Shown here one piece after another: positions 27,566 to 51,357 of a stretch of DNA of 64,000 nt (position 1 is its first letter; the number at the start of each line of letters is the position of its first letter). Under the pieces are notes generated by a model, which was given only the letters and a program-made list of their open reading frames with translations, was not told the origin of the DNA and searched no databases. A program made the translations under genes and the position numbers. The stretch comes from Podarcis tiliguerta (Eukaryota): assembly GCA_965153285.1 (NCBI GenBank), contig OZ229112.1. One strand, given 5' to 3'.

Positions 27566-28073
27566 TTACTTTGGGGGGGGGGTTGTTTCAGACTCAACAA
27601 GAGAGTCCCAACAGGAGTTCTGTAAAGTTGTAAAAGGACTGGCAGTGATCTTTGGAAGCATTTTATCTCAATGACTGTTGAGGGATTACTGCAAGCTTTA
27701 CTTTTCATAGTGCATGTCGTTTATGTTTGTGATGTTTATAGTGGCACTAGTGATCATACTATCCTGGTTACCTGTTTAGTTCTCCACCCTCAAGAATCCC
27801 TTGTTGTCAAGGGATTATTATTATTATCAAGGGGTTATTATTTTAGGCTGCAATACTATTATTTTCCAAGCTGGTGGTCTTCAATAAACTCATCAGCTAA
27901 CAAGCTCCAGTGAAGAATAATGTTTAATAAAACATCTCAAATTGCAATAGGGTCCATTTTCCTATAACATAATGTTTCTCCTTGATTGAAATAACATCAA
28001 CCAAAATCCTAGTTAGAAGCCACTCAAAGACACGGATTTTAATAACTTTTGTTTGTTTGTTTGTCTTCTGCAG

Positions 28074-29548
28074 GCAATCACATTGAGCAACTTCAGTCAA
28101 CTTATGTTAGTTCCCATCAGTTCCAGCAAATGTCTAAGGACTTTCAGGCCTGGTTGGACAAAAAGAAGGAAGAACAGAATCAGCCTTGTCCCATCTCTAC
28201 CAAGCTGGAGTCTCTGTGGACATTAATTGATGATCAGAAAGAGTTCAAGGCTGTCCTGACTGACCAGACTGGTTCTTATGAAAAAATCATCACAGAAGGC
28301 GAAAGTTTACTCCAAAAGACTCAGGGAGCAGAGAAGGCTGAGCTGCAGGCCCAGCTGAACTTGCTCAGAGGTAACTGGGATGAAATGAACAAGCAAGTTA
28401 AAGAAAGGCAAGATAAATTAAATGATTGTTTGGAAAAAGCCCTTAGATACAGAGAGCATGTAGAAAACCTACAACCCTGGATAGCGAAATGCCAAAGCAA
28501 TATCTCTCAAATAGAAATGAGCATAGATCCTGCTCGGCTGGAGAATTCCATCGCTCAGGTGAAGAGCTGGCAGAAGGACCTAGACAAACACCAAGGGTTG
28601 GTGGAGCTATTAAGTAATGCAGCTGAGACATTACTCAGTGCCTGTCAAACAGACAAAGACATTATTGAAGAAGAGAAGACACTGCTGATCCAGAACATGG
28701 ATATAGTCACAGAACAACTGCATGCTAAGAGAGATGGTCTGGAAAAGATGTCTCAGAGACTGAAAGAGTTTCAAGAGTCATCAAAGGATGTTGAAGAGCA
28801 GCTGAAGAATGCCAGGGAACAGCTGGAAACACACGATTCTCTCAAACCCCAGACTTACAGTAACAAACACTTGACGATTATGCAGGCTCAGCAGAAAACA
28901 CTCCAGGCCGTGAAGGCTCAAGTGGACCTTACAAAAAAGCTTGCCCAAGAATTGGTGGCAGATGCTTCAGATTCATCAGGTGTCTCTGACCTCTTGTTGC
29001 AGGCAGAAACGTTAGAAGAAGAATTCAGCACCATCAGTCAGCAGGTTGAAGATAAATGTTCATTCCTGGAGACTAAACTCCAGGGAATCGGCCATTTCCA
29101 AAACAGCATCCGAGAGATGTTTTCTCAGTTTGCAGAGTTTGACGATGAATTGGACAGCATGGATTCTGTGGGTAGGGATCTTGTCACACTGCAGTCACAG
29201 CAAAAGGATATAAAAACTTTCCTGAAAAAGTTGGAGGAACTCATAACCAGTAATGAAAATGCAAATAATACCTGCAAAATGATGCTAGCAAATGAAGCTG
29301 AAGCTTCTCCAGATCTTGCAGGTATAAAAAGGGACTTGGAGGCTTTAAATAAGCAGTGCAACAAGTTGCTAGACAGAGCAAAAGCCAGAGATGAACAGAT
29401 TGAAGGGACTATTAGTCGCGTTGAAGAGTTCTACAGTAAACTAAAGGAGTTTTCTAAACTGCTTGGGGAAGTTGAAGAGCATGAAGAGTCACAGGGTTCT
29501 GTTGGAATGGAAATTGAGACGATAAATCAGCAGCTGAACGTATTTAAG
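28074..29548 (+). CDS. DST: Dystonin large exon A18, (G)NHIEQL...QLNVFK
   Basis: ttctgcag acceptor, AAG|gtaaga donor, 1475 nt, phase 1-0; [34 protein letters not shown] as in recalled DST. Confidence 0.96.
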
Positions 29549-30367
29549 GTAAGAAGGACCTTTCTGAGTTTTTAGAATTCTGTATTGTAAAATGAAAACT
29601 AACTGTAAGAATATTGTGACGTGAGCTCCTTAGTAGTCTAGACCCCCAAGGAAAAGTGATTGGGTTGGCCCTCCTTTTTCAGCTTATAGATCATGTGTTG
29701 TAAGCCAGTCAGTTTCTTAAGAATTGTGTTCAAAGTCATTTTTCATGTTTCCCAACAGAGGGTGCTTTTTGCCTATTTTAAGACGAGTGAGATCTAATAT
29801 AACATACATCCCACCCAATGCATTCCCGTCTTGAGATCTAAAGCTTTATTAATAAGCAAGTTTTGTTTGTTTGTTTATGAATTCCAATGCTTCCTCTAAT
29901 TTCAACGGAGAAACGTAATTGCTGCAAAATAGTTACATCATAACATTTTTATTTGCCTTGTAATGAATAAGACTTGAGTTGTCCAACAGGAAGTGATATC
30001 ACATGCTCCTTTGGTTTGGGGGTCCTTGGAATTTACAAGTAATTTGAGGGTTGTGGTCTGAAGTTGTATGAAGTGTTCTCAGCTCAGCGTTCTCATGAAG
30101 CAATTTAGAAACTGAGAAGATGGTCTTCTCTTTGGTCAAAAGTTATTAGAGAAGCATTCTTAAGTTGTTTTAAAACAGAATGTCCTGCATTTTGCTTTGA
30201 AGATCTCCAGCAAAGCTGAGCTTCTTCGGTTCTCCTCTCTTCTCCTCTCCCACAGCTGCCATGATTAATGGTAATTTTTAAATGGTAATTTAGTGCAAAT
30301 ACACTAAATCATGCTTCCATTCAAGCACGCAGAAGGGTTGTCAACTGCAGCTTTTGTTATTCAGAGC

Positions 30368-30502
30368 AAACTTTTCCAAACTTGGATCTCCAGCTATTGT
30401 TAAACTACAATTCCTATCATCCCTGACCACCAATCCTGCTAGCTAGAGATGATGGGAATTATAGTCCAACAACAGCCAGAGACCCAAGTTTGGGAAACAC
30501 TG
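30368..30502. mobile_element. Short palindromic hAT-like MITE; related copies near 210-337, 1130-1192, 10630-10750, 13440-13565, 53945-54063, 56503-56628
   Basis: ttccaaacttggatctc...gagacccaagtttgggaa inverted ends; ctacaattcctatcatc/gatgatgggaattatag core shared by the dispersed copies. Confidence 0.65.
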
Positions 30503-33500
30503 CCCTAGAGCTTAACTAACACAGTTCAATTTACTAAAAAAGTTGGGATTCTTTAAGAATCTTTACATTTCCTTTGCTTCCCATTGTTACTATACTGCCT
30601 GGCTGAGAAGGCTCAGTGCTTCTGTGGCAAGAGAGCCTTCTCATGAACAGATTGCTGAATGATGGGATAGAATGAGGGCAGAAGCAGCCCTGAACTTTCC
30701 CCACCTCCACACCCATTCAGAATATAGCCATAATCTTTCCCTGAGAGCAAGACAAAGCACAATGAACACAGCCTCCAGCATCCCACGCCCCAGAGGCATT
30801 GCACAGGCATGCAGGAAGAAATAGATCCTGCTCTGAGTAGTGTGTTCATATCAAACAATTCCAAATAAAAGACAATGGGGAGAGGAACTGAAGAAGCAGC
30901 AATTCAACTGTCCTCTCTGACAGCTGGTGCTTATATATGTATTTGCGGCAGATATTTATTTCAGTTACTACGTGCACCATATGAAGAGCCAGCCCTCCTG
31001 TGACAGAGTTAAGGTGAGGTCAAACAGAGTCCTGGGCGAGGTCCAAAAAGATTAGCTTTCATTCCTGGGGATTGTCCCAAGAGTCATGACATGGGATCAT
31101 GCCAGGCATTATGCAGCCAAGAGGTTTCATCCAAACCTGGTTCTCAGGATCAAGAAAAGTACTGATCAATTAGTCAGGGCAAAACAAAGAAGTGTGGAGG
31201 TGAGCTAAGGCAAAGGCAACAGGCCATTGGCTGTGCATTTGTTCTGCTGAAGCATAGTTCTGGTTTCTGTCTTGTAACCCCGGCCCTCATCCAAGAAAGC
31301 TGTCTGGCAGAATTTATTTTAATATCCAGTGTGCCTAAGATAAACTCAGTGGCTGAAAGCAAAAGAAACAATCCTGCCTTGGGCACTAGGTGCTAACTTC
31401 CATTCCATAATGAACTTTCATCTCCTAAGATGGCACAGAAGGGAAGCACACCACTAGGTCCTCTTGCCTGCTAAACACCAGAATCAGTAGAGTAAAGGCA
31501 TATAAAGGCCTGAGCAAATGAAACATTATTTACCTGGCATACAAAAAATAACAGAAGGAGCCCTTCTGAACCAAAGATGGGGCTCCCCTGATGAAAAAGC
31601 CCTGTTTCAGGTTATCAGACAATAGTACCTGAAGAGATATAACAGTGGGCAGTGGAAGCAATCACTTTTTAAGGTACACTTGCTTCCAAGATGGGTTTTT
31701 TAAACTTGAAAATCATAAAAAGTACTTAAAGGATTGCTTTCTCCTATGTATTTCTTTCAGTGATCAATCAACGTCAGAGGTCTTGCTTTGCATCTCCCCA
31801 ACAGCACATATGCAGTGGGTGAGAACAATGAACAGGGCAATATCAGTTAAGGCACCAGTGCTCTGGACTGCCCTGCCCAGGAAAGCTTGTCTGGACCCAC
31901 CATTGTGTACATTTCACAAGCTCTTTAAGGGCTCTTTTGCAAACCCTTTGACTGAAGGTAGCTGATGGCTGTTAGCAGATCTCTCTGCTACTGTGATGAT
32001 AGTGGTTGTGCTACTACCATTTGTTTTTCTGTATTGTTTTACTGGCTTTTCTTTTTAAAAAGAAATGTGACAGGCTTTCCTTGCCATATAACAATGCAAG
32101 GTATCCCCCAGATAAATATGGGATGAACAGACGTTTGAGAATTTCCTCTGTCTTTCTCCACCACATCCTTGAAAGGGGATCAATGATATCCCTGAGGAGC
32201 TGTAGTCTGTGCAATCTACTGGCCCGTTCAGGCTTTCTTTTTGTAATTTGCAGTAAGAATTGGAACAATTCTGTAATTTGTAATTCTGTATTTGTAATTA
32301 TTACTTCATTTTATAATGTATATGGAACAGTTAGAACAAGAGACAAAAAATAAAAGGATGAAAAACAAAACTATAAAATAGGAATGTAGAATGAGTTAAA
32401 ATAACAAAGTAAAGACTTTCAACTTCACCAGATAATCTGTAGTTGCAGATTTGCCAGGCATGTGACAAAGGTTGTCTTGAAAATTATGGTGCCGCTATAT
32501 ATGTCATAAAGCAATGCCAAATCGTATCAAAAGTGTAAGATTTGGGCTGTTTTCTATTGAGTTGCAATTACTATTCATGCTGTCAAGATCATATATAAAA
32601 CTAGTTCTTTTGACAATATATATTTACATTGGTATCATCAAAAATATTCAGTAACATTAATTTTGGACAACAAACAATATTTTCTTTAGTGATATTTATC
32701 ATTTCTCTCAAAATTAAATTAAATTTTGCACCAACTGACATTCCCGCTATAAATGATAATATGTGCCAAGTTTATTGCAAACCCTCTAACAGTCAGGTGA
32801 TATAGAATAAAATATTTTTGACATTTGCAAAGGCTTGCAACGCCATCTGTGTAACATTTTTAAGTTTTCCCTAAGGAAACCAGAAACAGATTTTTAGGGT
32901 CATGATGCCCAAGTTTTATTCCAGTCCTTGGGAATAATTTGTGTGCCAATATCCAGTTCCCATATCTTTTTAAGGGGTGGCATAGATCCATAAGTTACAT
33001 TGAGCAATGTAGAGTACAGTTTAGAAACTAACCCTTTCTCCCCTCTACCCATTGTGCTTAATAATTTTTCAGATGGTGTTAAGGGTCTTAGAGCTTGTGT
33101 TTTTACATGTTCTTTTTAAAATAAAACTATGAATTTAATTAAAATAAATCCAGTTTGTGTTAAGTTAAGCCTTCTTTCTCTATGACAGTTTTCACATTTT
33201 TTTCTTAATTTCGCAAGTAAACGCTGCACTTTTTTGGTTTGGACTGCAACAAGCTCTTTCTGTGTCTGATTGTGTTTTGGGAACGTCTGACTTGGAGAAC
33301 TGGTGTTTCAATACGTTTGTGTGTATTGGGGTACTGTATATTTATTTATTATTTATTACATTGTATATCCCACCTTGCCTCTAAAGAGATCAAGGCAGCA
33401 TAAAGCTTCCCCCCTCTCCATTACCCTCACAACAGCCCCATAGGCTAGGCTGAGAATTGGTGACTAGCCCATAGTCACCCAGTGAGCTTCATGACCAAGT

Positions 33501-33628
33501 GGGAATTTGAAGCTTGTTCTCCCATGTCCTAGCATGACACTCTGATTTATTTATTTGTTTATTTATGAAAACACTCAGCATGTTCATTCCATGTACATTT
33601 TATCTAGAGCATCTTTGGGTTGTATTCA

Positions 33629-33727
33629 CTTAGTCATGCTTAGAGTAGACCCACTGGAAATGAACAGGACTTAAATCATTTCTAAAGCCCTGTTGATTTC
33701 AATGGATCTACTCTAAGCACGACTAAG
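33629..33727. repeat. Palindromic MITE-like repeat (hairpin); relative near 17160-17265
   Basis: cttagtcatgcttagagtagacccactggaaatgaacagg pairs with cctgttgatttcaatggatctactctaagcacgactaag. Confidence 0.7.
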
Positions 33728-36700
33728 TCTGGATCCAATTTGCTTGGCAGAATGTGTTCATCACATGCAACAATGCATTTTGGCAACAGTCGCACACAAA
33801 GCTTCACAAATCCCTGTTGTTGGACTACAAAGATTAGTCTCTTTCTTTGTCTTTAGCATCCGATTCAGGTTATGTGAGGGCAACGTGAATGGGTTTAATA
33901 GCACACTTCTGAAGGTCCTTTCGGAAGGACCTCTCTTTTTCTTGAAGATATGCACCTATGTTTGCAATAAGAAGAAAAACAGAGCTTTGTATTATTATTT
34001 CTATGAACCATTCTATGAATGGTTACAATTGGGTGGGGGTGGGAACCAATGGCTAAAATGTTTAGATTTGAAAGATAGTTAAATTGATCTTTTAATCTGC
34101 TCCTTGATGATACCTGATGGGTATTTTTATATGTTTTATTACAAATACTGTGTGTTTTAAATTTTGTTTTCCCTCTCTGATTCTTTGGGGGACGTTAGCG
34201 GGTTATTCTTGTGTTTATTTTGATTATGTATTTTATGTTTTTATGTTTTATGTTTTTGTGTTTATTTTGATTATGTATTTTATGTATTTTATGTATTTTA
34301 TGACCTGTGGGTATAAGGCGGTATATTAATTAATTAATTAATTAATTAATTATATTATATTATTCCTGATAATCCGTATTATCTGTTTTTATATATTTAA
34401 ATGCATTTTAAACCATGCTTCATTTACAAATAGGAATATGAAAAGTGGTTCGCATTATCCACTTTATCCAATAATAAGTCAACAGTCAACCGCAAAATTG
34501 TAAATTTTTCTCACAGTATATGCCTTTTGAGATGATGGTGTGGGCTTCTTTCAGACAGTGACCTGGTTTTCATGCCACACTAAGACAAACAATCTCTTAG
34601 TGCAAGTGTGCTGTTCCCAGAGAGGAGATAATGGTCATCTTGCTGCTCCTCAGTTGTTTTGCTGCTACACCAGACTGAGCTAAGCCATGGTTTGACTTAG
34701 CCTGTCATCTTAACTTGGGCTTGTGGCATGTCTCTCTCCACCATAATCATGATCTGTAACCAAGGTGTTTCCTGTGGATGACCACCATTTGAGGCAGAGA
34801 CCTAGCTTTTTGGTCTCCGTTCCTTGTTTTAGCAGTAAGCTACGGTGAGGGGTTGAGGGTATGTGTGTTGCTATTGTCCATAACTGCACCATCTCCTTTA
34901 CTAGCAAATCTCTTGATCCTGGGACAGGCTATCAGAGGGTCTGTACCTGGTGCTTGACCAAAGAAGCAGACTAGGGATGCTGCTGGTCGATCAATTACCC
35001 TGTTGCCCAGCAGCATGCTTGATCAAGCTGGTCAAGGTAGTCTCTGGACTATTTCAATATCCATTAGAGGCTGCCACTGTATTGGCTGAGCTCAAGACTT
35101 AAGGCCTTCATTACAACCATGCAGCTCTCTCAAATGGTCATTGGTCCAACACATCATTTAGGAGACACCCTTGATGTAGTCTTTGCCCCAAATGACATGA
35201 GGGATGGACTGAGGTTGGGTGTGGAAGTTCACTGCTTTGTCATGGTCCAATCATTACATGGTATAGTTTAGATTGGTAGCAACAATTTCCTGACTGGGAG
35301 CTGCCATTAGAAGTTTTGCGGCCAGGTACCATCAGTATGCTGGTGTCACTCAGCCATAACATCTGAATTAGGAGCAATTGTGCATGCCTTGGAACAGTGT
35401 CTGGACCCAGTTTTTAGCTTATTGATGTTTTTACTTGTTTTGAATGTTATAAATACTTATTTTTAGTGATTTTTTTTTCTGTTATTGTTACTGGATTATT
35501 CTTTTTGTAAACCGCTTTGAGGTTTTATTATAATCAATGGTATATAAATGTTGTGAAATAAACAAACGAATATACATGACGTGCAAAGCAGACTACTAAG
35601 TAATAGTAAAGTAATAAAGTTCAAGTGGTAGTCCCAAGCTCATTGGAGGAAGGGAATAGCAAATTGGAATTGCGACTAGTGACTCTTCTTTGAAATCATT
35701 ACCAAGAACGATGGTCCATAGGCATATATTTTTACAATTAACAGTAGTCAGTCCACTTTTAACGAGTATTGCTTTTGGGTAGCTGAGAAGAAGATTGTCT
35801 GCTTGTGGTTCTTATATCTTATCTATCGGTATTTACATAGAGAAAAGAGGATTTTGTTTTGTGTTCAGAAATCCTACCCAAGAACAAATCTTCCAGTGTT
35901 TCCAATCAAAGCTCCATTTTCAGTTACTTACAGTAGCTGGCATATTGTATTTCATGGTGTTTCTCTTTCATTCTCTCACTTTCATTCAGTTTTATTGTAG
36001 ACCTTTGTGCTTTAAAGAAAGTACGCATTGAATGAACGTGGGCAAAAGAAAAAATCAGCAGATGAACTTGCTTTACTTGGGTTACACCATGCCCATTTCC
36101 TCACAAAGAGCCAACCAGCTAAGATGATCCTGAAAAACAAAAGCCCTTGTTTAGTTTGTATTTTGCTGAACATTTTAATGAGCTACTTCATGCTAGGGTG
36201 GGGTTGTGGGGAAGCAGCGTTCAATCTCTGCCACGTAATTACAATCCTTGAAATGTCTGCAAAATATTTCAGCCATAAACCTGCCACACTCTTTATTCAT
36301 TCTTTTATTTATTAAAGCACATGGATTTATGTCAGTTTCTATCACTGAATGGCTCATTAAATCCCCTCACCCATTTAGACCATTACTAGATGCGGAAAGG
36401 GTCGTTTCAGTATATTTCCAGTGTTCAGATGTATGTCAAGAGGTGCCTTCTAATTGCACTTCATAGGAGATCTGGGCCCGGATGAATATTCCAGTTGATG
36501 AGCTTGAACTAATATTTAAATTGGTTTAGGTCGGTGTCGTAGATGGTGGCCTCTTACCTTGTTGATTGAATCAGTGCAATGTGTTAACTCTTCCCTGAAG
36601 TACATGGTTACTTTTCACAGGCGCCTTCAACTTCAATATTTGCATCTGTTTTGCAGCTTAAATATAAAATGAAAAAAAGAATAATAATTTATTATCACTA

Positions 36701-38994
36701 CATTAAAGAAAAAACTCAACATACATTTGGGGTGGCTACCTGCATACAGACCTTATCCTTTGTCCAGAGCCTTCTGTATATTCTAATGCTCACATGGAGC
36801 TCCTTTACAGATGGTCTTCCCCATTCATTTAAATGGAAGGAGTAGCTGCGTGTGTCAGTTCAGGTGCTGCCTTGGACATGTACAGTGCCTGTTCAACAAA
36901 TCCATGCTCAGCTGACTATAAATACATTCTGGGTTGGGAGTGACAGACTTCCTTTAAAGGAAGGTCTTAAGATTCATTGTCATTCCAGTACTGACCCATT
37001 TTGCTGCTTGAAGCAGAGCCCAAATAGTGTCTCCTGCCCCCTATCCAGGGCCACTGTTTTGAAAACACTTGCTGCACTTTATTTGGGAATAACCTTTGTG
37101 GCACACAATAAGATTTAGTTTGGAGTAGTGAATATGTATGGCAATGGACTGCCAGAAACTTCATTCCTGTCTGCAACTATCCCTTCTTATAGTGCTGCCT
37201 TCCCAAGGGAGGGGAACTTTTTCCGCTGTAGTTTTTGTATATGGTTTGTTGTGACTGCAGCTTGTGGTATGAAACATTGTCTTTTTAGTGGGTCATGATT
37301 GTTGTTAACAACGTGGGCATTTTTATATGTAGATATGCTGGTATACATATGGCAAATAAATTAACAATCCACCAGCCTTTAGAAATGAGCTGCTCTCCTT
37401 GCTCTGTATTATTTTTACTCTCCTTAGTGCTTTAGCTCTTTATTTTATTAAAAATATAATATGCCTTCCATCTAAATAGATCCAGAAACAAATAAGTAAA
37501 ACTACTCATGCTATTACCTCAATATAGTGTGGTTTTTAGGAGTACTGTACTGGGTGAGATTTTTGAAAAGTTGCAGCACTTCTTTGCATGTTGGGATTTG
37601 CAGTTGTCTGAGAGCCAGGAAGTGTAAAAAAATATCAAGCAAATCCCTTTTCATTGGATTAACTGGATTGTGAATGAAGAATGCATTCTGTAGTCATTCA
37701 GAGAGACCAATTTGCCGGCTAAATCCCTAATTATAGAATATAATGTACATGTGTTACAAATATAGAGCAAAGGATGCAATCCTATGGAGATTTTTCATGG
37801 GGCTTGCTCAGAAGTAAGATCTGGCTGTTAATTAAAATTGATTTATGGTGATGGTGGAAAGTAATTCAATTTGATTGAATTCTTATTATACAGCTGGTTA
37901 GTTTAGTTTATAATGCTACATACCATTAAAAGTGACCATCCACTATATTCAGATTCCTGTTACACTGCATAATTTGTAAGTACTGGATTATTATTTTTGT
38001 TATGAAGCAGAATAAGTGCAGTTTGTCAGTGTTTTAGAAGGGTCCTGGGTAGTCTGGTCCATATTTGTATGGTGTCAGGTTACCCGGTTAAGCAATATGT
38101 AGTACATTTTTGACATTTTGAACTAATTAGCACCGGTTTTTCCATTCTGCTTGTGAGCCACCACCCACCCACCCTCTTTTCCTCCAGAATTACAGAGCAC
38201 AGACTCCGATATGCAGGAGTGCTGCAGACAGGAACTTGCTCCTTTGTGCACCTCCCCCTGAAAAGGCTCAGCCTCATTCAGAGACAAGACAAACAGTAAA
38301 AGTGAAAGATGGCTAAGTAAAGTCATGTGGGGCAGGAAGCGTAAGGGGGAAGAGCTAAGAGGTCAGGCACCTCCTAATGCTCGGTTGGAATAATACTCAG
38401 GGAACGAATGCGATAGGAGCAGATGTTGCCTAAAGAATAGCAAAGGGCGTTTCTTTTAAGCTCACTATTGGGAGGGATGCCTGTCAGACCATAAGAAACC
38501 AGGGAGAGCCGGAAAGCTTATCAGCTGCGCTGGGCAGGACATGTGAGCGTTTATTGTTGTGAGCTCTTTTTAATGCCTTCTTCGCTACAGCTGCGCTTCA
38601 AGACGGAGATGAAAACAGTGACCACGCTCTTGTAGCCACCGTTTATGCAAAAAAAAAAGTCCTGCTGAATTTAAACAGAATGTGAATCTGTTGTGCCTTT
38701 GTGCCGGAGTGGAGGAAGAAATGCTCTAGTTTCCTGCTGTGTTGCCTTAAAACAGGGCAACAACTTTCAAGGAATGTGTTCTGCGAGAGAAACTGGGGGG
38801 AAAGTTTCTTTTTCTACTAATTCTGTTCCGTTGCTTTTTTGTATTATTATTATTTCATTGGTCTGGCTCCTCAGAAAACTGTTGTGTTTCCCATGGAACT
38901 TCTGAACTCACCACAGAGAAGCTTTAAGGAAGCAAGGAATAAACTGCCTTTTGAATCGAGGTTATTTATAGCTGCTGCCAAAAAAGGGGGAAAG

Positions 38995-39033
38995 CTTCTT
39001 CTTCTTCTTTTATTATTATTATTATTATTATTA
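38995..39033. repeat. Compound (CTT)n(ATT)n microsatellite
   Basis: read directly from the sequence. Confidence 0.9.
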
Positions 39034-39736
39034 CAACTCTGGATGTACCTTTGTTTTTCCTGAAGCCTTTCTCTGTGCCTTGGTCTCCACAGTCCACAGC
39101 TCTTCTGGTTTGTTTTTCTTCAAAAGCGTCCACAACATGGCTTATTTATAAAGGAGATGGAATTCTGCAAGCCATTTAAATGGATTACAGTTAATCTGTC
39201 ACCTCCTGAATATAGCGTGCTGCCTGCTATAATGCTGATTCATTTTGAAGACTTAATCTGGAGATTTAAGACACACATTTTGACCTAAAAATCGAAATGA
39301 AATGCTATGTGGGAAGTTCTGAGTCTTTTGAGCCACTTAAAGATTTTCCTGGGGTTTGGGGGTTTGTACATTTTGTTGGTGTCTTTGTGCGTTGAGTTAG
39401 TATTTTAAAATATTAAAAGGTGTGGGGGTTTTTTTTGTTTCCCCTCTCCCCACCCACCCCCTTCAGCTCAAGCACTTTATATTTTAGGGGCAGGGGGAGA
39501 AATGTTTTAAATCACAGCCAGGTAAACTTACACAGATGCACTGATTACGACCTTAACCGCCTCATAAATTATTTCCTGTGTTTTAGTATGTAAGCATCTT
39601 TCTGCTGAGGGCAAGTTTACTGTACTTTTTAAAAACTGCTTTTCTATTACTTTATTTTAATTTTTACTTTATGTGTGTTGCGTGTCTCCAATAAGGTAGC
39701 CTAGCAGCAGTGCTAGATCTGTTAATTCCTGCAGAA

Positions 39737-41035
39737 ATGGGGAAGCCGCTGAGCAGGCCAGACTGTTTACGCCAGAATCCTCCTTGTGTAGGAAAAGGTG
39801 ATGAAGAAGAAGAAGATATAAATATTGAGGACTGTTATGTTCCCCAGAGGTCAATCTATGACACAGTGCGGCTGAATGAACAGATTGACTCAGGTTCTAA
39901 AGGCAGCCTCTCCTCCAGGCATTTCTCAGATCGGACTTTGCCGTATAGTCATAGAACACTGGACCTTAGTACATTGTGCTCCAATGGTGCCCTCTCCTCC
40001 TCTAGTGTCTTTGAACTCAGAGGACGGGAAGCCAATAAGCTAGATGAAAAAATGATCTTTGATGCCCTTAAGCTGAACAGTGACATCATTCGAACAGCTG
40101 GCTTGCCCAAGGCAAAGTATCACACAGAAAAGAAAGAACATAGGAGATCCTGGAGGATGCTTGTCCCACCAAATTTTGCAGACTATGCAAATAAAAGTGA
40201 GTGCTCACTTGATGGGACTGTTGATGTGTCTGACTTAGCAGCAACAGGCCAGGTCAGATGTGGGACTAGTTCTCTAACTTCCGAAGAAGATGACTCTGGT
40301 CTGTGCAGTCCTCCAGCAGAAAGAGAAGAAAAACAAGATGTGCTAGAAGGGGAACAAACTCAATTTAGGAGCATATCTTCCATAGACGATAATCAGTTTG
40401 TGGGTAAATTTGGATCATTTTCTCCTACCATTTCTAGTAGTGAACATCAAATTTCATTGCTTACCTCCAGAAGTGCCCCTACCAGTGGACACTGTCGAGT
40501 AAAATTGCAGAATGCTTCACATATAGAGCAAGAACCTTTCTGGAACTATGAGGGCAACCAAGGGGAAGGAGATGGACATTGCAGTCCACTGACATATTTG
40601 AAAGAAGACCTCTTAGCACATCCCCAATGGCTCCAGGATGGTGAGAGGGAACATGATTTCACTTTAGACAAAGAGGAAGTGAGGAACAGCGCTGAAGTTA
40701 ATGAGCCATTAGACACCCAAGACAGGATGATTGAAAAGGACCTCCTGGATATTTCAACTCAGGATATAGATATTTATGATGATGATGATGATGATGATGC
40801 AGCTTTACATGCTAGTGATACGGACTTAGTAAAATATGTGATTTTGCATGAAACTGAGGAAAGTAATATGGCCCATACAAGTGCAATAGAATTGTCCTGT
40901 CAGGCTTTAGAGGCTAATAATACCACATGCTGTCAAAAAGCAAATCCAATCAGCGCTGAATTCAGCTTTTGGACTACAGGCATGCAAATAGAACAAACCT
41001 TGGATACAGTGTGCAATGGCATGTTGTCTTATAAG
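39737..41035 (+). CDS. Intronic 433-codon ORF: putative alternative first coding exon of a short DST isoform (KIAA0754-like)
   Basis: Uninterrupted ORF; strong Kozak (GAAATGG); phase-0 donor AAG|gtaatt compatible with exon A19; N-terminal motifs MGKPLSRPDCLR, IEDCYVPQRSIYDT, LDEKMIFDALKL, RRSW...PPNF resemble MACF1-nested KIAA0754 as recalled; not spectrin-like and not TE-like. Confidence 0.8.
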
Positions 41036-42412
41036 GTAATTCCAAACTTAAATGCATTCTTTTCATGCTGCAGGGTGGGTTATTTTTTATTTTATTTTTT
41101 TTCTTCTGTGATTGCATCATGAATGCTTCTGTTTAGATTTTGCTAATCTACCCAAAGAGTTCCTTTAGAATCATTTGCCCAACAAGTTATTAGAAGTCAG
41201 AAATTGGCGAGATGGTCACTTCAGTAAATTGATTAAGGGCAGTTTGTGACAGGGTTGATTGCTTCCAGCTGTTTGGTTGCATGGCTATTTATTGTCCAGA
41301 TGGTGCCTGTTACCCTTTATTTGGAATGCTTCCACTAGGCATTGATGTTCAGCACCCCCTCCTCCCCTCCCCTCAAATTATGTTTCAAGCAGCCAATGCC
41401 ATTCAAGGGCAGATAGGCCTTCCCTATTCAGATTTAACCAGATTTCAGCTGCAGCCATATACTGTACACACTTTCATGGGAGTAAGGCCCATTAAACCCA
41501 ATGGGCATGCTTCTTCTGAGTTGACACGTATAGGGTTGCACCGTTCATCATAAAGGTATACACAACGATGCTCAGATTGCTGCGGTTTCCAAAGTACACA
41601 GATTAAAGGCTTGTTGCACGTACTGAAATTATTTCCTTGCATCTTCATGCCAAAAAGTAGTCCTAAAGTTGTAGGGGATTTTTTTACAAGGGATCTTGTA
41701 ACATTTACTGAGCGGTGAATGAAGTAAGGAAGTAGAAAACAGCTTTGTAATAAGCATGGGGAGCTTGTGAAGTCTTTAATTTAATTTTGTTCTTTTTGTT
41801 TTTGGTCCCTCTGATCTGGTTGTGTCTTGAGTTATTTTAGGACTTGTTGCTAAGCTGTTCTGGCAAACTCTAGCCTCAATTCCTACTTTTGTGAGTGGGT
41901 ATGTGTATCTAAACAACAAATCAAGGGGAACAACTCGGTTTGGATTGTTATGGAATTGTCTTAAAAATATATGAACATCTGAAATAGAAGAGAGTTGGAT
42001 TGAAGGACTGCATTACTAGTTCCATGGGCCTAAACTGGAGCAGGACTTGTGTTTCTCACACAGCAACCTCAAACACAGGAAGCTTCTTTTGAAAGAGAGG
42101 GGAATTTCAAAAGTAGTTTATGGAACCTGGGGTGTGTACATGTGCCTGCCTGTTTGATTGCCAAAGATACTACTGAGCTAACACTTGGGGATGTGTAAAT
42201 TAGCTTTTGCATCCCAGCCCTTGTTTATTTCTCTAAAGTAAAGAGAACTTGCCCATATTATATATTATTTTGTGGGAAAGGTAAGACCTGTTTGCTGTTT
42301 TCAACTACTTGGTTCCTCAGAACTCTGCTTTATAATGCCCCCCCCCCTTTAACAAATCCCACAATGTCCTGCAAATAGTGCTATTGAGTGCAGCAAAACC
42401 AGCATAAACAGC

Positions 42413-42415
<3 letters not shown>

Positions 42416-42442
<27 letters not shown>
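42416..42442. repeat. (TG)n microsatellite
   Basis: about 13 TG units. Confidence 0.95.
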
Positions 42443-42444
<2 letters not shown>

Positions 42445-43874
42445 CCTGGTTGCTACTATGTAACACACCACCGTGTCTGAGGATTATTGCATGTAGTCTC
42501 AAACGTGTGTGAGCTGTCCATGTTCGGACTTAAGTTTCTCGCTGCCTCTGCAAAACCCCCTTCTCCCAGTTATTTGTGTGGAATCAAGGCCTGTCCTGTG
42601 TGTCAAATGTGCTTGCTGTGTGTTGAATTGCTGGCTGCTGTTATGACGTAAACTTAGGTGTGAAAATGTGCTGTTTGCAGACTATCATAGAAAATCTGGG
42701 TTTCTTACACTATGTACATAGCAAGTTTCTGCTTTCCTACTAGTGTTGTGCTTGACCATTTTGGTGTACGATTTATGTATCCCATCTTGGGGAGGCTTCT
42801 TACAATTTTTGTTTTCAATTATGTGAGCATAAAATATTGAGGTACATTAACTGTAAGCATGCTTTATTTTCAGACTGTTCTAGGAATTTGGGTGTCCTGG
42901 GCTACTTGAATGTCTAGCTTCATAGGTTCTGAGGAATAACTTTAGCCATACTGAGGTACACTTGTAGTATCCCCATAACATTGCTTGTATTAAGGGCATG
43001 ATGTTACTAGTGTCAGCTGAAATATATATTCAGGATGTGAGCCATATTTGCTAGTAACGCTATAATAATAAAGCTCAGTACAGTATTACAGTACAATGGC
43101 TTCACAATATTTTGCCGACTATAGTGAAATTGCTGCCAAGGGACAGTGTCTGTAGTAGTAGTAGAAGAAGAAGAAGAAAAAGAAGATGGGGGGAAGGGGG
43201 GGACTACTTCAAAGGTAAGAAGCTTTAAGACCACAGTTTGAATAGCCTGGGCTCATAATACCACCAACAGTATTTGATGCCTGTGGAATATTTTCTGTCA
43301 CTAGCCTTTGCAAGTCCTCAAATGAACATCACTTAGGTTGGTGGGTTGAGTTAACCTGCATTAGGATATCATTGTGTGAAGCGTGCTTGAATTTCTTGCC
43401 AATGAAGACCACCTGGGAAATAAAGGGAGAAGATCCCCAAGGTTTTTCAGTATCTTCTAAAACAATATAACCATTACTAGTCTTATCTAGAAGGTGAATG
43501 CTGGTGTAGTTCCTTAGTCACATGATCAGCTCATTCTCCCAGGCCATTCCTGAGGTCCAGGCTCACCATGCTATAGTGGCCCCCAAATCATTGGATAGCA
43601 CTTGCATTTCTCCACTGTGCAGTTAGGTCCCTTCCTGCATGTGCCCAGCATCTCATTGCTCACTTGGTCTGTAGGAGCCACACTGTCCAACACCAGCTCC
43701 TCCCATTAGAACTAAGAGCACTGCATCACCTTTAAATGGCTATGCAAATCATTATGCACCACAGAAACATATGCTGAGCATATTCAGACGATTGATTAAT
43801 TTCTTCACCAAACTTTAAGCATTTCCCTTGTCCACCGTTGCTACTCATACTTTCAAACTCTACTATAGAGACTC

Positions 43875-44525
43875 TGGGCACTGTGTATTTGGTCTTTCAG
43901 AAAGGGTTTGACAAAGTACTTCACCACAGACTCCTTAGTAAGCTTAATCATGGAATAAAAGGAGAGGTCCTCCTACTGTTCTGCAACTAATTAAGGAACA
44001 GGAAGCAGACAGTAGGAATAAATGGGCAGTTCTCCCAATTAAGGGATTAGCATTGGGATATGGGCTTGATTATAAATTATAAAAGTGAGCAGTTGTTCAG
44101 GGTGGTTAAAACAAAAAGAGACTGCAAGGAGATCCAAAGTGATCTATCCAAATTGGCTGAATCGTACTAGAACCCAGGACCATTGTATGAAGCTAAATGT
44201 TGGAAGATTCAGGACAGAACTGAAGAAAGAACTACTTCATGCAGTAAATAGTTTTAACTTTGACAAAGAAGAAGTGGTGACCATTACTGTGATTGGCTTC
44301 AAAAAAGAATTAGACAAATTCACCGAAGATAGAGCTGTCAATGGCTGCTAGCTATGATGGCTATGCACTCTGTTGGAGGAAGTATGCTTCTGTACGTCAG
44401 AGTCACAAGTCCTTTTTGCACTCTGCTTTCAGGCTTCCCACAGGCATCTGGTTGGCCACTGTGAGAACAAGATGTTGGTCTAGATGGGCATTTGGTATGA
44501 TCCATCAGGGCTCTTATGTTTTTAT
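43875..44525 (+). mobile_element. Internally deleted CR1 LINE (reverse-transcriptase fragment plus 3' end)
   Basis: gtgtatttggtctttcagaaagggtttgacaaagta (VYLdFQKaFDKV-like), NRKQ.VGINGQFS-like segment, 3' tail ggcatctggttggccactgtgagaac...ctcttatgtt. Confidence 0.8.
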
Positions 44526-45014
44526 GGGCTACTTGTGTCTGCTGGCCATACGCAAAGGATAACTGTTTGCACAGAGCTGCATAGCCCCAAGAAGAATGGG
44601 CTATTGTGAACAGATATCTGAACAATTACTACCCACAATATGTCATCCTCTTCAGTTTGACATAGGTGTCCACAACGTGTACCTTTTGCTTTAAATATTG
44701 TTTGAGCATCTATATTAGGAAGATTCAGTATGGAGCACTATGTTTGTCTTTTCCTTTTAAATACAGTGGGGTTTTTTTTTAATGTAATAGCAGTTTCTTA
44801 ACTCCTCTTTGGGTTAATGTGTATATAATTTACTCTGAGTTGTTTTGTGTTTACAACATTAAGAGCAATTTTATATGTACACTCTGTAGCTAAATACTGT
44901 CTTTCAACACTGTGTTCATGACATGCTGTGTGATTTTACTACTGATATCTGCTCTAGTCGTTACTTATGCTCAGCATGTTCCAAACTTAATAATCTAAAT
45001 GTGCCTTTGCCTGC

Positions 45015-45015
<1 letters not shown>

Positions 45016-45052
<37 letters not shown>
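45016..45052. repeat. (TTTC)n microsatellite forming the polypyrimidine tract of exon A19
   Basis: about 9 units ending roughly 18 nt upstream of the AG acceptor. Confidence 0.9.
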
Positions 45053-45053
<1 letters not shown>

Positions 45054-45070
45054 TTCCTTTTGATCTGAAG

Positions 45071-45232
45071 GTATTTGAGAAGGAAAAGATTGAACCACTG
45101 CAGGTTAAGCAACAGGAGGTAAATTGGTTGGGTCAAGGCCTTATTCAGAGTGCTGCTAAAAATGCTAGTACTGATAACCTTGAGCGTGATCTTGAGGATG
45201 TTAACACAAGATGGAAAACTCTCAACAAAAAG
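45071..45232 (+). CDS. DST: Dystonin exon A19, [11 protein letters not shown]...TLNKK
   Basis: (TTTC)n tract plus gaag acceptor, AAG|gtatgt donor, 162 nt, phase 0-0. Confidence 0.95.
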
Positions 45233-45559: not shown

Positions 45560-46003
45560 CTACTCAACTGTCTTCAGCCCTATTTAGGGAAGATTTTAAT
45601 AACTGATGTTTTAATGTATTTTAATCTTTAGAGAGAGCCAGTGTGGTGTAGTGGTTAAGAGCGGTAGTCTCGTAATCTGGGGAACCGGGTTCGCGTCTCC
45701 GCTCCTCCACATGCAGCTGCTGGGTGACCTTGGGCTAGTCACACTTCTCTGAAGTCTCTCAGCCCCACTCACCTCACAGAGTGTTTGTTGTGGAGGAGGA
45801 AGGGAAAGGAGAATGTTAGCCGTTTTTAGACTCCTTCGGGTAGTGATAAAGCGGGATATCAAATCCAAACTCCTCTTCTTCTTCTTTTGTTGGAAGCTGT
45901 CCAGAGTGGCTGGGGAAACCCAGCCAGATGGGCGGGATATAAATAATAAATTTATATTATATTATATTATATTATATTATATTATATTATATTATATTAT
46001 ATT
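45560..46003 (+). mobile_element. LINE (L2-like) 3' end, split by a SINE, with (ATTAT)n tail at 45952-46003
   Basis: ...tttagggaagattttaat...ttttaatcttt[SINE]tgttggaagctgtccagagtggctggggaaacccagccagatgggcgggatataaataataaa followed by a pentanucleotide tail; left end approximate. Confidence 0.6.
45633..45886 (+). mobile_element. Full-length tRNA-derived SINE (Squam3-type, CTT tail)
   Basis: A box TGGTGTAGTGG, B-box-like GGTTCGCGTCT, core gggtgaccttgggctagtcac, (CTT)n tail; family name from memory. Confidence 0.82.
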
Positions 46004-46051
46004 AATGTCCAAATAAAGATGCATGCATGCATTCAAGAGGCACATGAAGTA

Positions 46052-46802
46052 CCGTATTTTTCACCCCATAGGACGAAACCCAAAACCAGGTCGGGGAAAC
46101 CGAACCAGGTCGAGGAACAGCGGGATGGCGGCGCTGCGCCTCCTTGCTGTCCCCCGAGCTTGTGGGGCTGGCCGATGTCTGTCCGGCGAGCGGGGCGCTC
46201 TGCTTCAGGGCGCCCCTCGCGCTGGGCGGCAGACTGCTATCCGCAGTGTGGGGAGCCCTGCGGGGGACTCCCCAGGGCTCCAACACGCTGCAGATGTCTG
46301 CCCGGCGCGAGGGGCGCTGTGCTTCAGGGCGCTCCTCGCGCCGGGCGGCAGGCTGCTATCCGCAGCGTGGGGAGCCCTGCGGGGGACTCCCCAGGGCTCC
46401 AACATGCTGCGGATGTCTGTCCGGCGGGCGGGGCACTCTGCTTCAGGGTGCCCTTTGCGCCGAGCGTCAGGCTGCTATCCGCAGCGTGGGGAGCCCTGCG
46501 GGAACTCCCGCGGGGCTGCCTAGGCTGCGGATGTGTTCCCGAAGCACTGGGCGCTCTGCTTTCAGCGCGCCCGGCACTCTGGGAAGCAGGCTGCTATCCG
46601 CAGCCTAGACAGCTGCCTAGGCTGCGGATGTGTTCCTGAACTCCCGCAGGGCTGCCTAGGCTGCGGATGTGTTCCTGAAGCCTGGAGAGCAAGAGGGGTC
46701 GGTGGGCACAGCGAAAGCCTGCATTCGCCCCATAGGACGCATCCAGATTTCCCCTTCATTTTTGGAGGGGGAAAAGTGCGTCCTATAGGGCGAAAAATAC
46801 GG
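46052..46802. mobile_element. Tc2/pogo-like non-autonomous DNA transposon (751 bp) with GC-rich internal minisatellite
   Basis: 24-bp TIR CCGTATTTTTCACCCCATAGGACG vs CCGTATTTTTCGCCCTATAGGACG, TA flanks; repeat units start at 46174, 46293, 46412, 46530. Confidence 0.88.
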
Positions 46803-47110: not shown

Positions 47111-47281
47111 GTTGCTCAAAGAGCAGCCCAGTTGCAAGAGGCACTGCTCCACTGTGGGAGGTTTCAAGATGCTGTCGAATCTATCCTTAGCTGGCTTATT
47201 GACACAGAAGACCTTGTGGCTAATCAGAAGCCTCCATCTGCTGAGTTCAAAGTTGTGAAGGCACAAATACAGGAACAGAAA
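47111..47281 (+). CDS. DST: Dystonin exon A20, VAQRAAQLQ...IQEQK
   Basis: tgttag acceptor, AAA|gtgagt donor, 171 nt, phase 0-0; [20 protein letters not shown]. Confidence 0.96.
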
Positions 47282-49736
47282 GTGAGTGGAAGTTATTTAT
47301 CTATCTTTAGATTAATTATATTTTCTCTGTCACCTGCTCAGTTGGGTATTTTAAACTGTTTTTAAAGCTGTGTGTTAATGTTATAACCCACCCGGGGCCT
47401 TAGGATGAATAGTGGGTAATTAATAACAGTAATAACATGTGGCCTACTGGATAACAGTGTGGCTGAGTGTGTATTAGACGTGTGCTATAAGAGGTGCAGT
47501 TGCAAAAGAGCCTGGAAAAAATACCTTTCCATAGTTTCTGTGATCCCATCACTTAGGATGGTTGTCATGGATGCTTCTGTGGGGGATGTGTTTGGCTTTT
47601 TTCAGGGGAAGGGCAAATTTTGTCAGCCCAATCTGTGAAATTCTCTTTAAAGATTTGCCCTTTGATGCTTTCATTTTGGAATTCTCCACTCATTTTAGCA
47701 GAGGCATCCAGACTGTAGCATAGTAGTGGGACAGGATCTGTTAGTCCTGCCTTTTACTTGTACGGCTCGGATTCAGTGATAGACAGCAGGTTTTCCTGGG
47801 GGAAAGTGGCTAGGCAAGCGGAAGTGTGGGATGAGCCCTAAATTGCTTTGGTTCATTCAATGAGAAAAGTGACCAAGAAATATAACAAATAGTTGGTATG
47901 TAAATTTATATCCAGTTCTTCTTTCACCATGGAACTCAATGGATTTCCCAGGCAGCCTCCCATCCAGGCATTGATTGCATCCTTTGTCCGGAGAAATGTG
48001 GTTTTCTTCACTTCTTTGGGAAATGTGGGGAGCTGGTGCAGAATGGGGGGGGGGCAGAGGCCATGTATAGCACAGAGTAAACAATCATTTCATTGGACCA
48101 GCTTTCTGTATGTATTGCAAGGAAAACTCTGGAATATCTGTGCTGGTTCTTGGCATCATTTCATGCACGTGTACATTTCACTGGATGCACATCAAAAACA
48201 ATTATTTCAAGGATCAAAAGCAATCGGATGTTTGAAAAGACATCACTGATATTGTGAAAAGGGGCAGGCGGAAGAACATTGTAGAGCTACTCCCTTGAGT
48301 TGAAATAAAGTTCAAAATTTTGTCAGGGCTTCAATCCTCCTTCATCATTTTGACAACCCTCCACCCCACCCCTTCTCAGCTAATCTCTTCTTCCCATATA
48401 TGCCATTCAGTGTGGACATATACGAGTTGCCTATACATATGGGTTAGTAAGGGATGAAATCTGTGCCTGGTGTCAGCTTCTGCTCCACCCCTTACTTCCT
48501 GACTTCCGTCTCTAGAGTTTTGTAGAATCTGTTTTGATTTAGGGTAACATCTTGGTGTGCCTGTATCTTCAGTTAATAACGTCAAACACCCCTGCTTCAG
48601 ATTTTTCAACAATTGTTTGTAACACAGTTGCTGATGGATTGTTAGACCCTCACTTAAAAAAGGGGGGGAGGGGGAGAAATTTCGTATTAAATACTGAATT
48701 GGCAGTTGTGGAGTAAATACAGCACATCAAACTCTGTAACCAGATCCATAATTACTTTCCTGTTCAAAATAAATGTGTGAGCAAGGAAAGAGCAGGTCAC
48801 AGCATGCACAGCATCAGAGAGAAGTTGTGCTCTCTGAGCAGTCTTAACAAAAGGCAGTAGGAGAGAGGAGGGGGGATTTTTGGCTGAAACATAGAAGGCA
48901 ACCCCCAGGGAAGAGCACTGCATGAAGCTTAGTGAATCAAGTCCTCAGGTTGCCTGGCCAAAGTGAGTATCCAAAGTTGCAGCTGCGCGCAACATAATAA
49001 TCTCCAAAATGATCATATGTTTGTACTGAAAATTTGGGACGCAATCCAGAGAAAGTTATAACATGTTTGATTCCCCATTAAAATAATTTGGTCTTAGGAA
49101 CATCATTAAGCCCTGAATTGTGTTCATCTTACTGAATGCGACCACAAGTGTTTTGAAAGGTGAGCACTATATAAACAAACGGATATTTCTCTGGATTGCA
49201 GTGGATCATTGCAAACATCACCAGCGTATTGAAAACATGGGGAGGGTTCGTATGTGAAGCGGAAAATTTCCCATCTTTTCTTTTTCTGAAATGGAAAAGC
49301 TTCCCCAAAAGTTCCCAACACTGTCATGTGTTATAAAATGTCCCACTGTGATTCCCCCCTCTTCCCGCACATGTCAACATCATACCTCATATAAGGCATA
49401 TATATCTGTAGCCCTTCTAGAGCTTCCAGTATAGCATTGAAAAGAAATCTGAATGAAAACATTTGGAAGGATGCTAGACCTTTACAACCGATGCTAAGAT
49501 TGGCAGAGTTTTCTCGCTCTCATAATGAAATTACTTATTTATGCAATATATGGCACTTGCATTGTAATACTGCTGGCACCCTCACAATTTCCTGCCATCT
49601 CAGAAAATTGTTCCCTTAAGCCTGCCTCTTTTTGCCAGTAAACAAGACCTTGAAGAATCTGCCTCTTAATCTTTTTACAGCCTTGTAGTGAACAGTCATT
49701 TCCTGGCAATTTGATTTTTGATTATTTTGTCTCCAG

Positions 49737-49903
49737 CTTCTCCAGAGATTGCTGGATGACCGCAGACCCACTGTTGAACTAATCAAGCGTGAAGGGGAAA
49801 AAATTGCAGAGTCAGCAGAGCCCGCTGATAAAGAGAAGATCTTGAAACAGCTGAGCCTCCTGGATAGCAGATGGGATGCACTGCTTGATAAAGCAGAAAC
49901 AAG
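49737..49903 (+). CDS. DST: Dystonin exon A21, LLQRLLDDR...KAET(R)
   Basis: ctccag acceptor, AG|gtacct donor, 167 nt, phase 0-2. Confidence 0.94.
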
Positions 49904-50316
49904 GTACCTGAAATGTTTGCATTCACTTAGGGGTACAGTAGGGTGTACTCCTTGATACAGCATTAGAAACTAATTTGAAACTATAGCAACATTTTCATCC
50001 AGTTAGCTGTTAGATTCACATTTGAAGCTAAATGAGAAAATATCTCTGAGTATATTATAAGTTTTATTTTTAGAAATTTCAGTGAAATAGTATGGGGAAA
50101 TCAGTATCACATAATCACCCGTTCTTGTAGTAAAGTGGATGTCTCCCATAATCTTCCAATTATGGGAACTACTTTTAGGTGTAGTTCAGAGATTTTCGAA
50201 GTAATTCATTGAACGTAATTAAACCGAAGTAGTTCTTTCCAAGCGCTGGTTTTAAATTTTTAGTATTTCATACATCCCTCATCCCACAAAATGTGCTTTG
50301 TTTTCACATATTGTAG

Positions 50317-50476
50317 GAATCGTCAGTTGGAAGGTATCTCAGCTGTAGCACAGCAATTCCATGAAACTTTAGAACCACTGGTTGAGTGGCTAACCATCAC
50401 TGAAAAGAGGCTTTCAAATTCAGAACCCATTGGAACACAGGCTTCCAAACTACAACAGCAGATTTCTCAACATAAA
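50317..50476 (+). CDS. DST: Dystonin exon A22, NRQLEGIS...ISQHK
   Basis: ttgtag acceptor, AAA|gtaaga donor, 160 nt, phase 2-0. Confidence 0.94.
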
Positions 50477-50700
50477 GTAAGATCTTAATGTGCCTTTAAT
50501 TGCGGCAATTATTTTATGATTTGTAAATCAAAAGTGGAGTATTCCCCCCAACACATTTTTTTTATTATTTATATGCTTCTTTTACCATCAAAGTTATATT
50601 CTTTTGGTTGTTCTTGAGTTGTTTTCATATTTGGTTTTATGTTTTTTTTGTTTGCTTGTTTTTCTTTTCTTTTTCTTACTACTTTGAAAACTTCATTTAG

Positions 50701-51027
50701 GCCTTTGAGGAAGACATCGCCACTCGCAACAAAAATTTGGAGCAAGCTATTAATATTGGTCAGGCTTTAAAGGCATTGAGCTCCAAGGAAGATAAGGAAA
50801 TGGTGCAGGAGAAACTAGATTCTTCAGAAGCCCAATACATTGAGATTCGAGAGAAAAGTGGCAGTAGGGCTCAGCTTCTACAGCAAGCCTATTGCAATGC
50901 TCAGATTTTTGGAGAGGATGAAGTTGAATTGATGAATTGGCTGAATGAAGTACACGAGAAACTGAGCAAACTGGCAGTCCAAGACTACAATACTGACTTG
51001 CTTGTGAAGCAACAAACTGAAATGCTG
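50701..51027 (+). CDS. DST: Dystonin exon A23, AFEEDIATR...QTEML
   Basis: catttag acceptor after long T tract, CTG|gtattt donor, 327 nt, phase 0-0; IFGEDEVELMNWLNEVH. Confidence 0.92.
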
Positions 51028-51272
51028 GTATTTCCATTTATTTTCTGTTGATTTTATTTTACCATTTTAAGCACTATTTCATATTACTTCTCATTTTTTT
51101 TATTATAGTTATTTAATTCTGTATCCTGATCATTTATTTTTAAGCCTTTATCCTCCCCACACCCTGCTCCAATTCTCACTCTGAGAGAATAAGTGGCTGC
51201 TTATAGACTTTCGGCTTTATAGATTTTAAATGATGACTTCTCTGATGATAAAAGCATTCTAAAATTTTCTAG

Positions 51273-51357
51273 GCTCTCCAAGATGAGATTCTGCTCAGAA
51301 AGCAAAATGTTGATCAGGCTATACAAAATGGTTTGGAGCTTCTCAAACAAACAACAG
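51273..51357 (+). CDS. DST: Dystonin exon A24, [10 protein letters not shown]...KQTT
   Basis: ttttctag acceptor, G|gtgaga donor, 85 nt, phase 0-1. Confidence 0.93.

Follow-up and report, generated by a model that had tools for sequence, protein, structure and literature searches.

A probable ancient alternative first coding exon in a large DST intron of Podarcis tiliguerta, and the short headless dystonin that it would encode

We analysed 64,000 nucleotides of Podarcis tiliguerta DNA (contig OZ229112.1 of assembly GCA_965153285.1; hereafter the window) and found that a large intron of the dystonin gene (DST) contains a 433-codon open reading frame. Very probably it is the squamate orthologue of an exon of ancient origin that serves DST as an alternative first coding exon and gives a short isoform lacking the head of the protein. 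An earlier note on the same DNA had proposed such an exon from the letters alone, and all parts of its interpretation that could be checked stood up to closer analysis. It had also called the exon hidden; this description must be abandoned, since many models in RefSeq, Ensembl and GenBank already include the exon, and the Fig. 1 legend of Voelzmann et al. 2017 (bioRxiv 10.1101/122010) mentions "an additional exon conserved between dystonin and MACF1". Judged by that description in the part of the text available, the additional exon is most likely the one described here. Both the exon and the short isoform are known already, from many gene models and one review, and it is the functional work that is missing.

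On its plus strand the window contains part of a spectraplakin gene with spectrin-repeat exons; the ORFs 26362-27006 and 28049-29572, together with the exon starting at 45071, match Pfam Spectrin. The upstream exon ends in phase 0 at the donor TTTAAG/gtaaga (29548/29549; a slash marks the exon boundary throughout), and the intron coordinates proposed earlier, 29549-45070 with the acceptor directly before 45071, are therefore correct and define an intron of 15.5 kb. Inside this intron, an ATG at 39737-39739, flanked by G at -3 and G at +4, opens a frame that runs for 433 codons without a stop until it reaches AAG/GTAATT at 41035/41036, and the sequence confirms that this phase-0 donor fits the acceptor at 45071. 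Because an in-frame taa is located upstream at 39692, the ATG at 39737 is the earliest possible start, and reading past the donor the first stop is the tga at 41120-41122. Open frames of at least 476 codons are expected by chance only about 5e-9 times per window (assuming a stop probability of 0.063 per codon), and the only other ORF of comparable length in the window, 28049-29575, is a real spectrin exon. The frame 39737-41035 thus ends at a GT donor whose phase suits the constitutive exon that comes next, as an alternative first exon should. The exon at 45071 itself ends at 45232 (AAG/gtatgt), and the first 18 residues read from 45071 match the residues that follow the junction in orthologous short models. 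The features are collected in Table 1.

Table 1. Features in and around the module exon (positions in the window).
Feature	Position	Strand	Evidence
Upstream spectrin-repeat exon, open frame from 28049; joins acceptor 45071 in full-length DST	28049..29548	+	Pfam Spectrin E 1e-25
Candidate acceptor (ttaattcctgcag/), 2 nt 5' of ATG	39722..39734	+	Sequence only
Probable alternative first coding exon of DST, KIAA0754-type N-terminal module	39737..41035	+	ORF; 48 homologous clusters; lizard identities
Lipidation-type N-terminal motif Met1-Gly2-Lys-Pro-Leu-Ser6, Cys10, Cys17, Lys20	39737..39796	+	Alignment A1
Conserved block, residues 30-51, predicted helix 40-51	39824..39889	+	Alignment; AlphaFold2 block pLDDT ~78
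Conserved block, residues 102-113 (LDEK.IFDALKL), predicted helix 104-113	40040..40075	+	Alignment; block pLDDT ~79
Conserved basic motif, residues 136-144 (RRSW..x.P)	40142..40168	+	Alignment
Fast-evolving, predicted disordered linker, residues 166-426	40232..41014	+	pLDDT <50; low identity
Splice donor gtaatt, phase 0	41036..41041	+	Sequence; collapse of lizard similarity; orthologous models splice here
Read-through tail to first stop, not conserved	41036..41122	+	Sequence; unrelated Elgaria tail
Polypyrimidine tract with (CTTT)10, acceptor ctgaag/	45015..45070	+	Sequence
Next exon, 54 codons, spectrin repeat, common with full-length DST; proposed splice target	45071..45232	+	Phase 0; Pfam Spectrin

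With regard to the region upstream of 39737, no promoter signature in the form of a CpG island or a clear TATA was evident. The candidate acceptor there, which reads cctgcag/ at 39734/39735, makes a non-coding exon further upstream possible. As a separate observation, mammal-like ORFs from Logan contigs stay open for 13 codons upstream of their Met-Gly start, which also hints at a non-coding upstream exon. Several repeats were encountered on the downstream side. The polypyrimidine tract of acceptor 45071 includes a perfect (CTTT)10 microsatellite at 45015-45054, and changes in its length could alter the strength of this acceptor for the canonical and the short-isoform splice alike. Simple repeats, (TG)14 at 42415-42443 and (TTATA)10 at 45952-46004, lie in the introns on either side of exon 45071. 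The intron after exon 45071 also has a GC-rich minisatellite at 46174-46604 (119-bp unit, 3.6 copies, 83% matches, no Pfam match), which explains three overlapping ORFs at 46019-46639 as well as a local GC peak of 0.51.

The encoded N-terminal module (below, the module) has a wide set of vertebrate relatives. A Pfam search with the ORF 39737-41035 returned no family, and the ORF showed neither a repeat nor a transposon signal, in keeping with the earlier statement that it is not spectrin-like or TE-like. An exhaustive phmmer search of 1.84 billion representatives gave 48 related clusters, 43 of them at E <=1e-10, and in nearly all of them the match begins at residue 1 of the hit. The closest relatives are lizard proteins: identity is 81% across all 433 residues for the Elgaria 'uncharacterized protein LOC134397954' and 74-76% over the whole exon for a Phrynosoma dystonin model, and residues 1-60 are 98-100% identical to lizards of other families. 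Further named matches were a whale shark protein (LOC125483062), hypothetical proteins of 420-440 aa from sturgeon and carp, a Latimeria 'MACF1 isoforms 6/7-like' protein, fish MACF1 models of 1.9-3.3 kaa, one hagfish protein and a Hyaena 'KIAA0754 homolog' (P0014), the last with E 8e-41 for residues 1-255 against 1-248. The likeness to KIAA0754 that the earlier note had suggested for the first ~150 residues is hence real, as the named matches include both a KIAA0754 homologue and MACF1 models. KIAA0754, the ORF nested in MACF1, we take to be human NM_015038 / O94854. No invertebrate match to the module was found by phmmer or in the follow-up protein searches.

To what the exon is joined could be read from longer proteins. 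A second protein search, which took residues 1-160 of a long model from fish as its query and admitted long candidates, found 72 long spectraplakin models of 1.9-3.4 kaa, many of them automated predictions that may copy one another, and nearly all start with Met-Gly-Lys-Pro-Leu-Ser. Those labelled as DST measure 2.1-2.75 kaa, most of them 2.4-2.75 kaa, and come from mammals (Suricata, Plecturocebus, Rhinolophus, Sus, Balaenoptera, Castor, Pipistrellus and Ursus) and from non-mammals (Haliaeetus, two turtles, Pseudonaja, the lizard Phrynosoma and many teleosts). In the DST-type models the module ends in ...LDTVCNGxxxx(K/Q) and is followed directly by VF(E/Q)KEEIEPLQ.KQQ.VN. The exact junction predicted earlier is present in Phrynosoma, Haliaeetus, turtles, the snake Pseudonaja, six mammals and three Logan contigs, and a partial model from the bank vole (P0009) carries the same DST junction. 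In the Phrynosoma dystonin (P0117) it reads ...CNGMLSDK/VFEKEEIEPLQ, which differs from the predicted sequence by one residue. The Phrynosoma model also follows the order of the window. In a comparison run with 45125-45161 masked (N), residues 1-431 of the model fall on 39737-41041 and residues 484-1243 on ten downstream exons at 47111-63021 with 84-98% identity.

The Logan contigs add evidence at the level of transcripts. They are 9,093, 10,073 and 9,814 nt long and encode 2,636, 2,690 and 2,690 aa, respectively (P0118, P0120 and P0131). Since each contains an uninterrupted 8-kb ORF while the exons of the gene are kilobases apart, they represent spliced mRNA. They are transcript evidence for the spliced form, though from other species; the three proteins look mammalian, as do the Logan proteins P0002 and P0003. 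For Podarcis, the index of sequencing runs held no run recorded as RNA that contains the stretch around the exon; runs X1-X14 (80-150 million letters), flagged 'RNA? may be DNA', contain 0.42-0.65 of the words of this stretch and could be RNA or exon-capture libraries.

The same arrangement is seen in the paralogue. MACF1-type models begin with a first exon of ~1,000-1,130 aa and then continue with xFQKEQVDPLQLKLQQVN, the homologue of the DST exon, so the MACF1 copy precedes the homologous exon as had been anticipated. The length that follows the junction is nearly constant, being 2,258 aa in Haliaeetus DST, 2,258 aa in Vombatus MACF1 and 2,264 aa in Xenopus MACF1, and a partial hagfish model makes the corresponding join (AFQKGKVEALQ) at residue 608. 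Because the MACF1 and hagfish copies join the homologous exon, with ~2,250 aa remaining in both paralogues and in the partial hagfish model, the internal start predates the DST/MACF1 duplication, which upholds the age that the earlier note had assigned to it. In a maximum-likelihood tree of the first ~200 residues, the DST-side modules formed one clade (99/99) that follows the species tree from shark through ray-finned fishes to mammals and sauropsids, with Podarcis among the squamates. The MACF1-side modules lie across the tree from this clade, and hagfish is a long branch whose placement is unsure. These results show that the module was duplicated together with its host gene. Judged by the sequences retrieved, the internal start looks vertebrate-specific.

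Two further groups of teleost sequences carry the module. The protein 'si:ch73-305o9.3' (P0041, P0043, P0044 and P0047) is the product of a free-standing gene, 660-990 aa long, with a diverged N-terminal module in which Gly or Cys replaces Asp9; the tree places it with the teleost MACF1 modules. Four 'MACF1-like' proteins, among them ones from Arapaima and Paramormyrops (P0034, P0056, P0114 and P0115), consist of the module and then a rod that is only 22-25% identical to the post-junction part of DST. Early-branching teleosts may thus possess a divergent spectraplakin paralogue in addition to DST and MACF1, which would be the third.

Sequence constraint is distributed very unevenly along the module. 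Residues 1-60 are 95-100% identical across amniotes and 87-90% identical to teleosts, residues 61-165 are 76-95% identical across amniotes, and identity outside squamates drops to 20-34% for residues 261-400. The length of the DST-side exon is nevertheless kept at 412-434 aa across jawed vertebrates, the exception being one snake model of 367 aa. When the lizard is compared with mammals or bird, 8-12 indel events are counted, every one of them in frame, and the reading frame of the C-terminal LDTVCNG motif is preserved throughout. A run of GAT repeats at ~40778-40800 encodes seven consecutive Asp inside the module; as this run is missing in Elgaria, it is a lineage-specific in-frame expansion. 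At the other end of the exon, the similarity between Podarcis and Elgaria ends right after K/VI, in which VI is the translated GTAAT, and the Elgaria RefSeq model P0001 reads through into a 53-aa tail unrelated to the Podarcis tail. Since similarity stops at this point and the read-through tails are unrelated, coding constraint ends at the donor; the Podarcis tail would be usable in an unspliced transcript only. In both paralogues, fish and mammals alike retain the end of the exon and the phase.

At the N-terminus, alignment A1 shows M1, G2, K3, P4, L5, S6, P8, C10, R12 and C17 to be invariant, and most of the homologues fetched open with the motif or have it close to residue 1. Neither the two paralogues nor hagfish show any change at G2, S6, C10 and C17. 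The general consensus for N-myristoylated proteins has Met1-Gly2 with a hydroxyl or other small residue at position 6, and cysteines close by are typical palmitoylation sites. Gly2, Ser6 and the nearby Cys10 and Cys17 fit this consensus for N-myristoylation or dual lipidation, and the N-terminus of the module is accordingly a putative lipidation site as far as a consensus motif can indicate one. The available part of a human myristoylome study has neither KIAA0754 nor this DST N-terminus among its entries; its MACF1 entry is an unrelated Gly5087 exposed by caspase. Further into the module, D32, Y34 and P36-I40 of the first conserved block are invariant and Y41-T43 and N47-D51 nearly so, as are L102, D103, E104, D109, L111 and K112 in the second block and R136, S138 and P144 of the basic motif, the last three in both paralogues. 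AlphaFold2, run with a 22-row alignment, gave a mean pLDDT of 47 and two short helices that coincide with the conserved blocks, and the module is predicted to be mostly disordered. A PDB sequence search with the module produced no match at E <=1, and the best ESM Atlas score, 0.78, was inside the noise range (an AMER3 row scored 0.75).

The reading that deserves most attention beside an alternative DST exon is that of a stand-alone nested gene, whose unspliced transcript ends within the intron and encodes a protein of ~460 aa without any spectraplakin part; in that case the spliced models would represent either minor forms or errors of gene prediction. RefSeq indeed gives the orthologue a gene entry of its own, without splicing, in Elgaria (LOC134397954, 487 aa) and in whale shark (LOC125483062, 430 aa), in the same way as KIAA0754 is kept in mammals, and the Hyaena protein is likewise named as a KIAA0754 homolog. 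Moreover, teleosts do have a free-standing relative in si:ch73-305o9.3, and Voelzmann et al. 2017 (bioRxiv 10.1101/122010) leave both options open in the part of their text available. Against this, conservation ends exactly at the GT donor with unrelated read-through tails in two lizards, this boundary and its phase are retained between fish and mammals in both paralogues, and mRNA-sized contigs encode the spliced form of 2,636-2,690 aa. In addition, there is no AATAAA within 1.5 kb past the read-through stop, where only two ATTAAA variants occur. We therefore regard a stand-alone gene as unlikely to be the main explanation, although the separate RefSeq models mean that a stand-alone product may coexist with the spliced one.

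The remaining readings fare worse. That the ORF is a conserved but silent or decaying relic in Podarcis, or an untranslated frame that arose by chance or from a transposon, might be suggested by the two thirds of the module that evolve fast and are predicted to be disordered, and by the lack of any RNA-labelled run containing the stretch in the index. It is very improbable given a frame intact over 433 codons with a chance expectation of ~5e-9, identities of 81% and 74-76% to lizards of other families that rise to 98-100% over residues 1-60, an intact donor and acceptor, and the lack of any repeat or transposon signal or Pfam match. We can give hardly any credence to an internal cassette exon of full-length DST. 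The candidate acceptor cctgcag/ situated 2 nt before the ATG would allow for it; however, there is an in-frame stop at 39692, and the module stands at residue 1 in nearly all models. The direct coding join was also tried on the sequence, and the sequence excludes it: the module is unable to serve as an internal coding exon because phase-0 position 29548 joined to 39735 meets a stop after 5 codons.

With the alternative first coding exon of DST as the preferred reading, the following course of expression can be proposed. Transcription would start inside the 15.5-kb intron, presumably from an internal promoter, translation would begin at ATG 39737, and splicing would join position 41035 to exon 45071. 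The product would be ~2,600-2,700 aa long and carry the 433-aa, mostly disordered module at its N-terminus, followed by ~15 spectrin repeats, two EF-hands, the microtubule-binding GAS2/GAR domain and a C-terminal tail, and it would be devoid of the CH actin-binding and plakin domains. This domain content is read from orthologous models, as the window ends before the C-terminal exons. Pfam analysis of P0117, P0127 and P0120 gave 11-15 Spectrin matches, EF-hand pairs, one GAS2 and nothing else notable, and the precomputed domain lists of all DST-type models comprise Spectrin, EF-hand and GAS2 with no CH or plakin family. The composition foreseen for the short product in the earlier note is thereby matched in its orthologues, and 'headless' is a fair description of it. 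On the basis of the consensus, Gly2 would be N-myristoylated and Cys10 and Cys17 possibly palmitoylated, which would anchor the N-terminus in a membrane. With its C-terminus bound to microtubules, such a protein would act as a membrane-to-microtubule tether unable to bind actin. As far as the gene models indicate, the same device is carried by MACF1, whose exon is catalogued separately as KIAA0754.

A broader proposal can be attached to this, namely that both vertebrate spectraplakins have kept, ever since before the DST/MACF1 split, a never-studied, lipid-anchored headless isoform that links membranes to microtubules without binding actin. We put it forward tentatively, with somewhat more doubt than confidence. 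No functional study of the DST form was found in the literature, consistent with what the earlier note had stated, and we found no description of an internal-promoter or headless isoform of a vertebrate spectraplakin. The KIAA0754 literature retrieved consists of gene lists or variant tables only, and none of it pairs KIAA0754 with dystonin or with myristoylation. The disease genetics of dystonin and MACF1 is interpreted through three isoform classes, a, b and e. To these a headless isoform, conserved over ~half a billion years and beginning with an invariant N-terminus of lipidation type, would add a fourth, and only mutations in the distal half of the gene would affect it. If the proposal is true, every C-terminal disease mutation in DST or MACF1 hits the headless isoform and N-terminal ones spare it, a vulnerability that could explain part of the isoform-dependent spread of phenotypes in HSAN-VI and dystonia musculorum. 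For the annotation of the Podarcis genome, the exon should be entered as an alternative DST first exon and not as an orphan LOC gene. As the exon is already found in gene models and one review, the value of the present analysis is that it documents well, and draws attention to, an isoform that is deeply conserved but unstudied.

The closest known counterparts are the annotated short dystonin models of Phrynosoma platyrhinos (P0117), Haliaeetus ('dystonin-like', P0127), Rhinolophus (P0128) and Sus scrofa (A0A480TTF5, P0130), which are orthologues sharing the first exon, the junction and the downstream exons. Nothing essential distinguishes Podarcis from them, apart from the poly-Asp expansion and ordinary divergence of the linker. 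Voelzmann et al. 2017 (bioRxiv 10.1101/122010) offer, in the part of the text available, no analysis of function or lipidation and no comparative dating like that given here. The same source cites putative myristoylation or palmitoylation sites in the N-terminus of DST-a3/b3 (type 3; their reference 50), likewise a proposed lipid-anchoring leader on a spectraplakin. That leader, however, is a separate exon at the 5' end of the gene, before CH2, and its isoforms retain the plakin domain and the whole rod.

KIAA0754 is homologous to the module over its first ~250 residues, with the same invariant N-terminus and conserved blocks. Its place is equivalent as well: it lies in the intron that precedes the homologous spectrin-repeat exon, and MACF1 models show it joined to this exon by splicing. 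The two differ in that the MACF1-side exon encodes ~1,000-1,130 aa as opposed to 412-434 aa on the DST side, the modules are not alignable past residue ~165 and certainly not past 250, and they fall on opposite sides of a branch with 99/99 support. Among other giant proteins of the spectrin superfamily, short isoforms from internal promoters are known from dystrophin (Dp260, Dp140, Dp116 and Dp71) and from the short nesprins. Their first exons are unrelated to the present one, and they are experimentally established, whereas the DST form is so far a prediction from gene models and mRNA-sized contigs; the logic is nonetheless the same, in that a unique first exon in a long intron is joined to the distal rod to give a headless C-terminal isoform.
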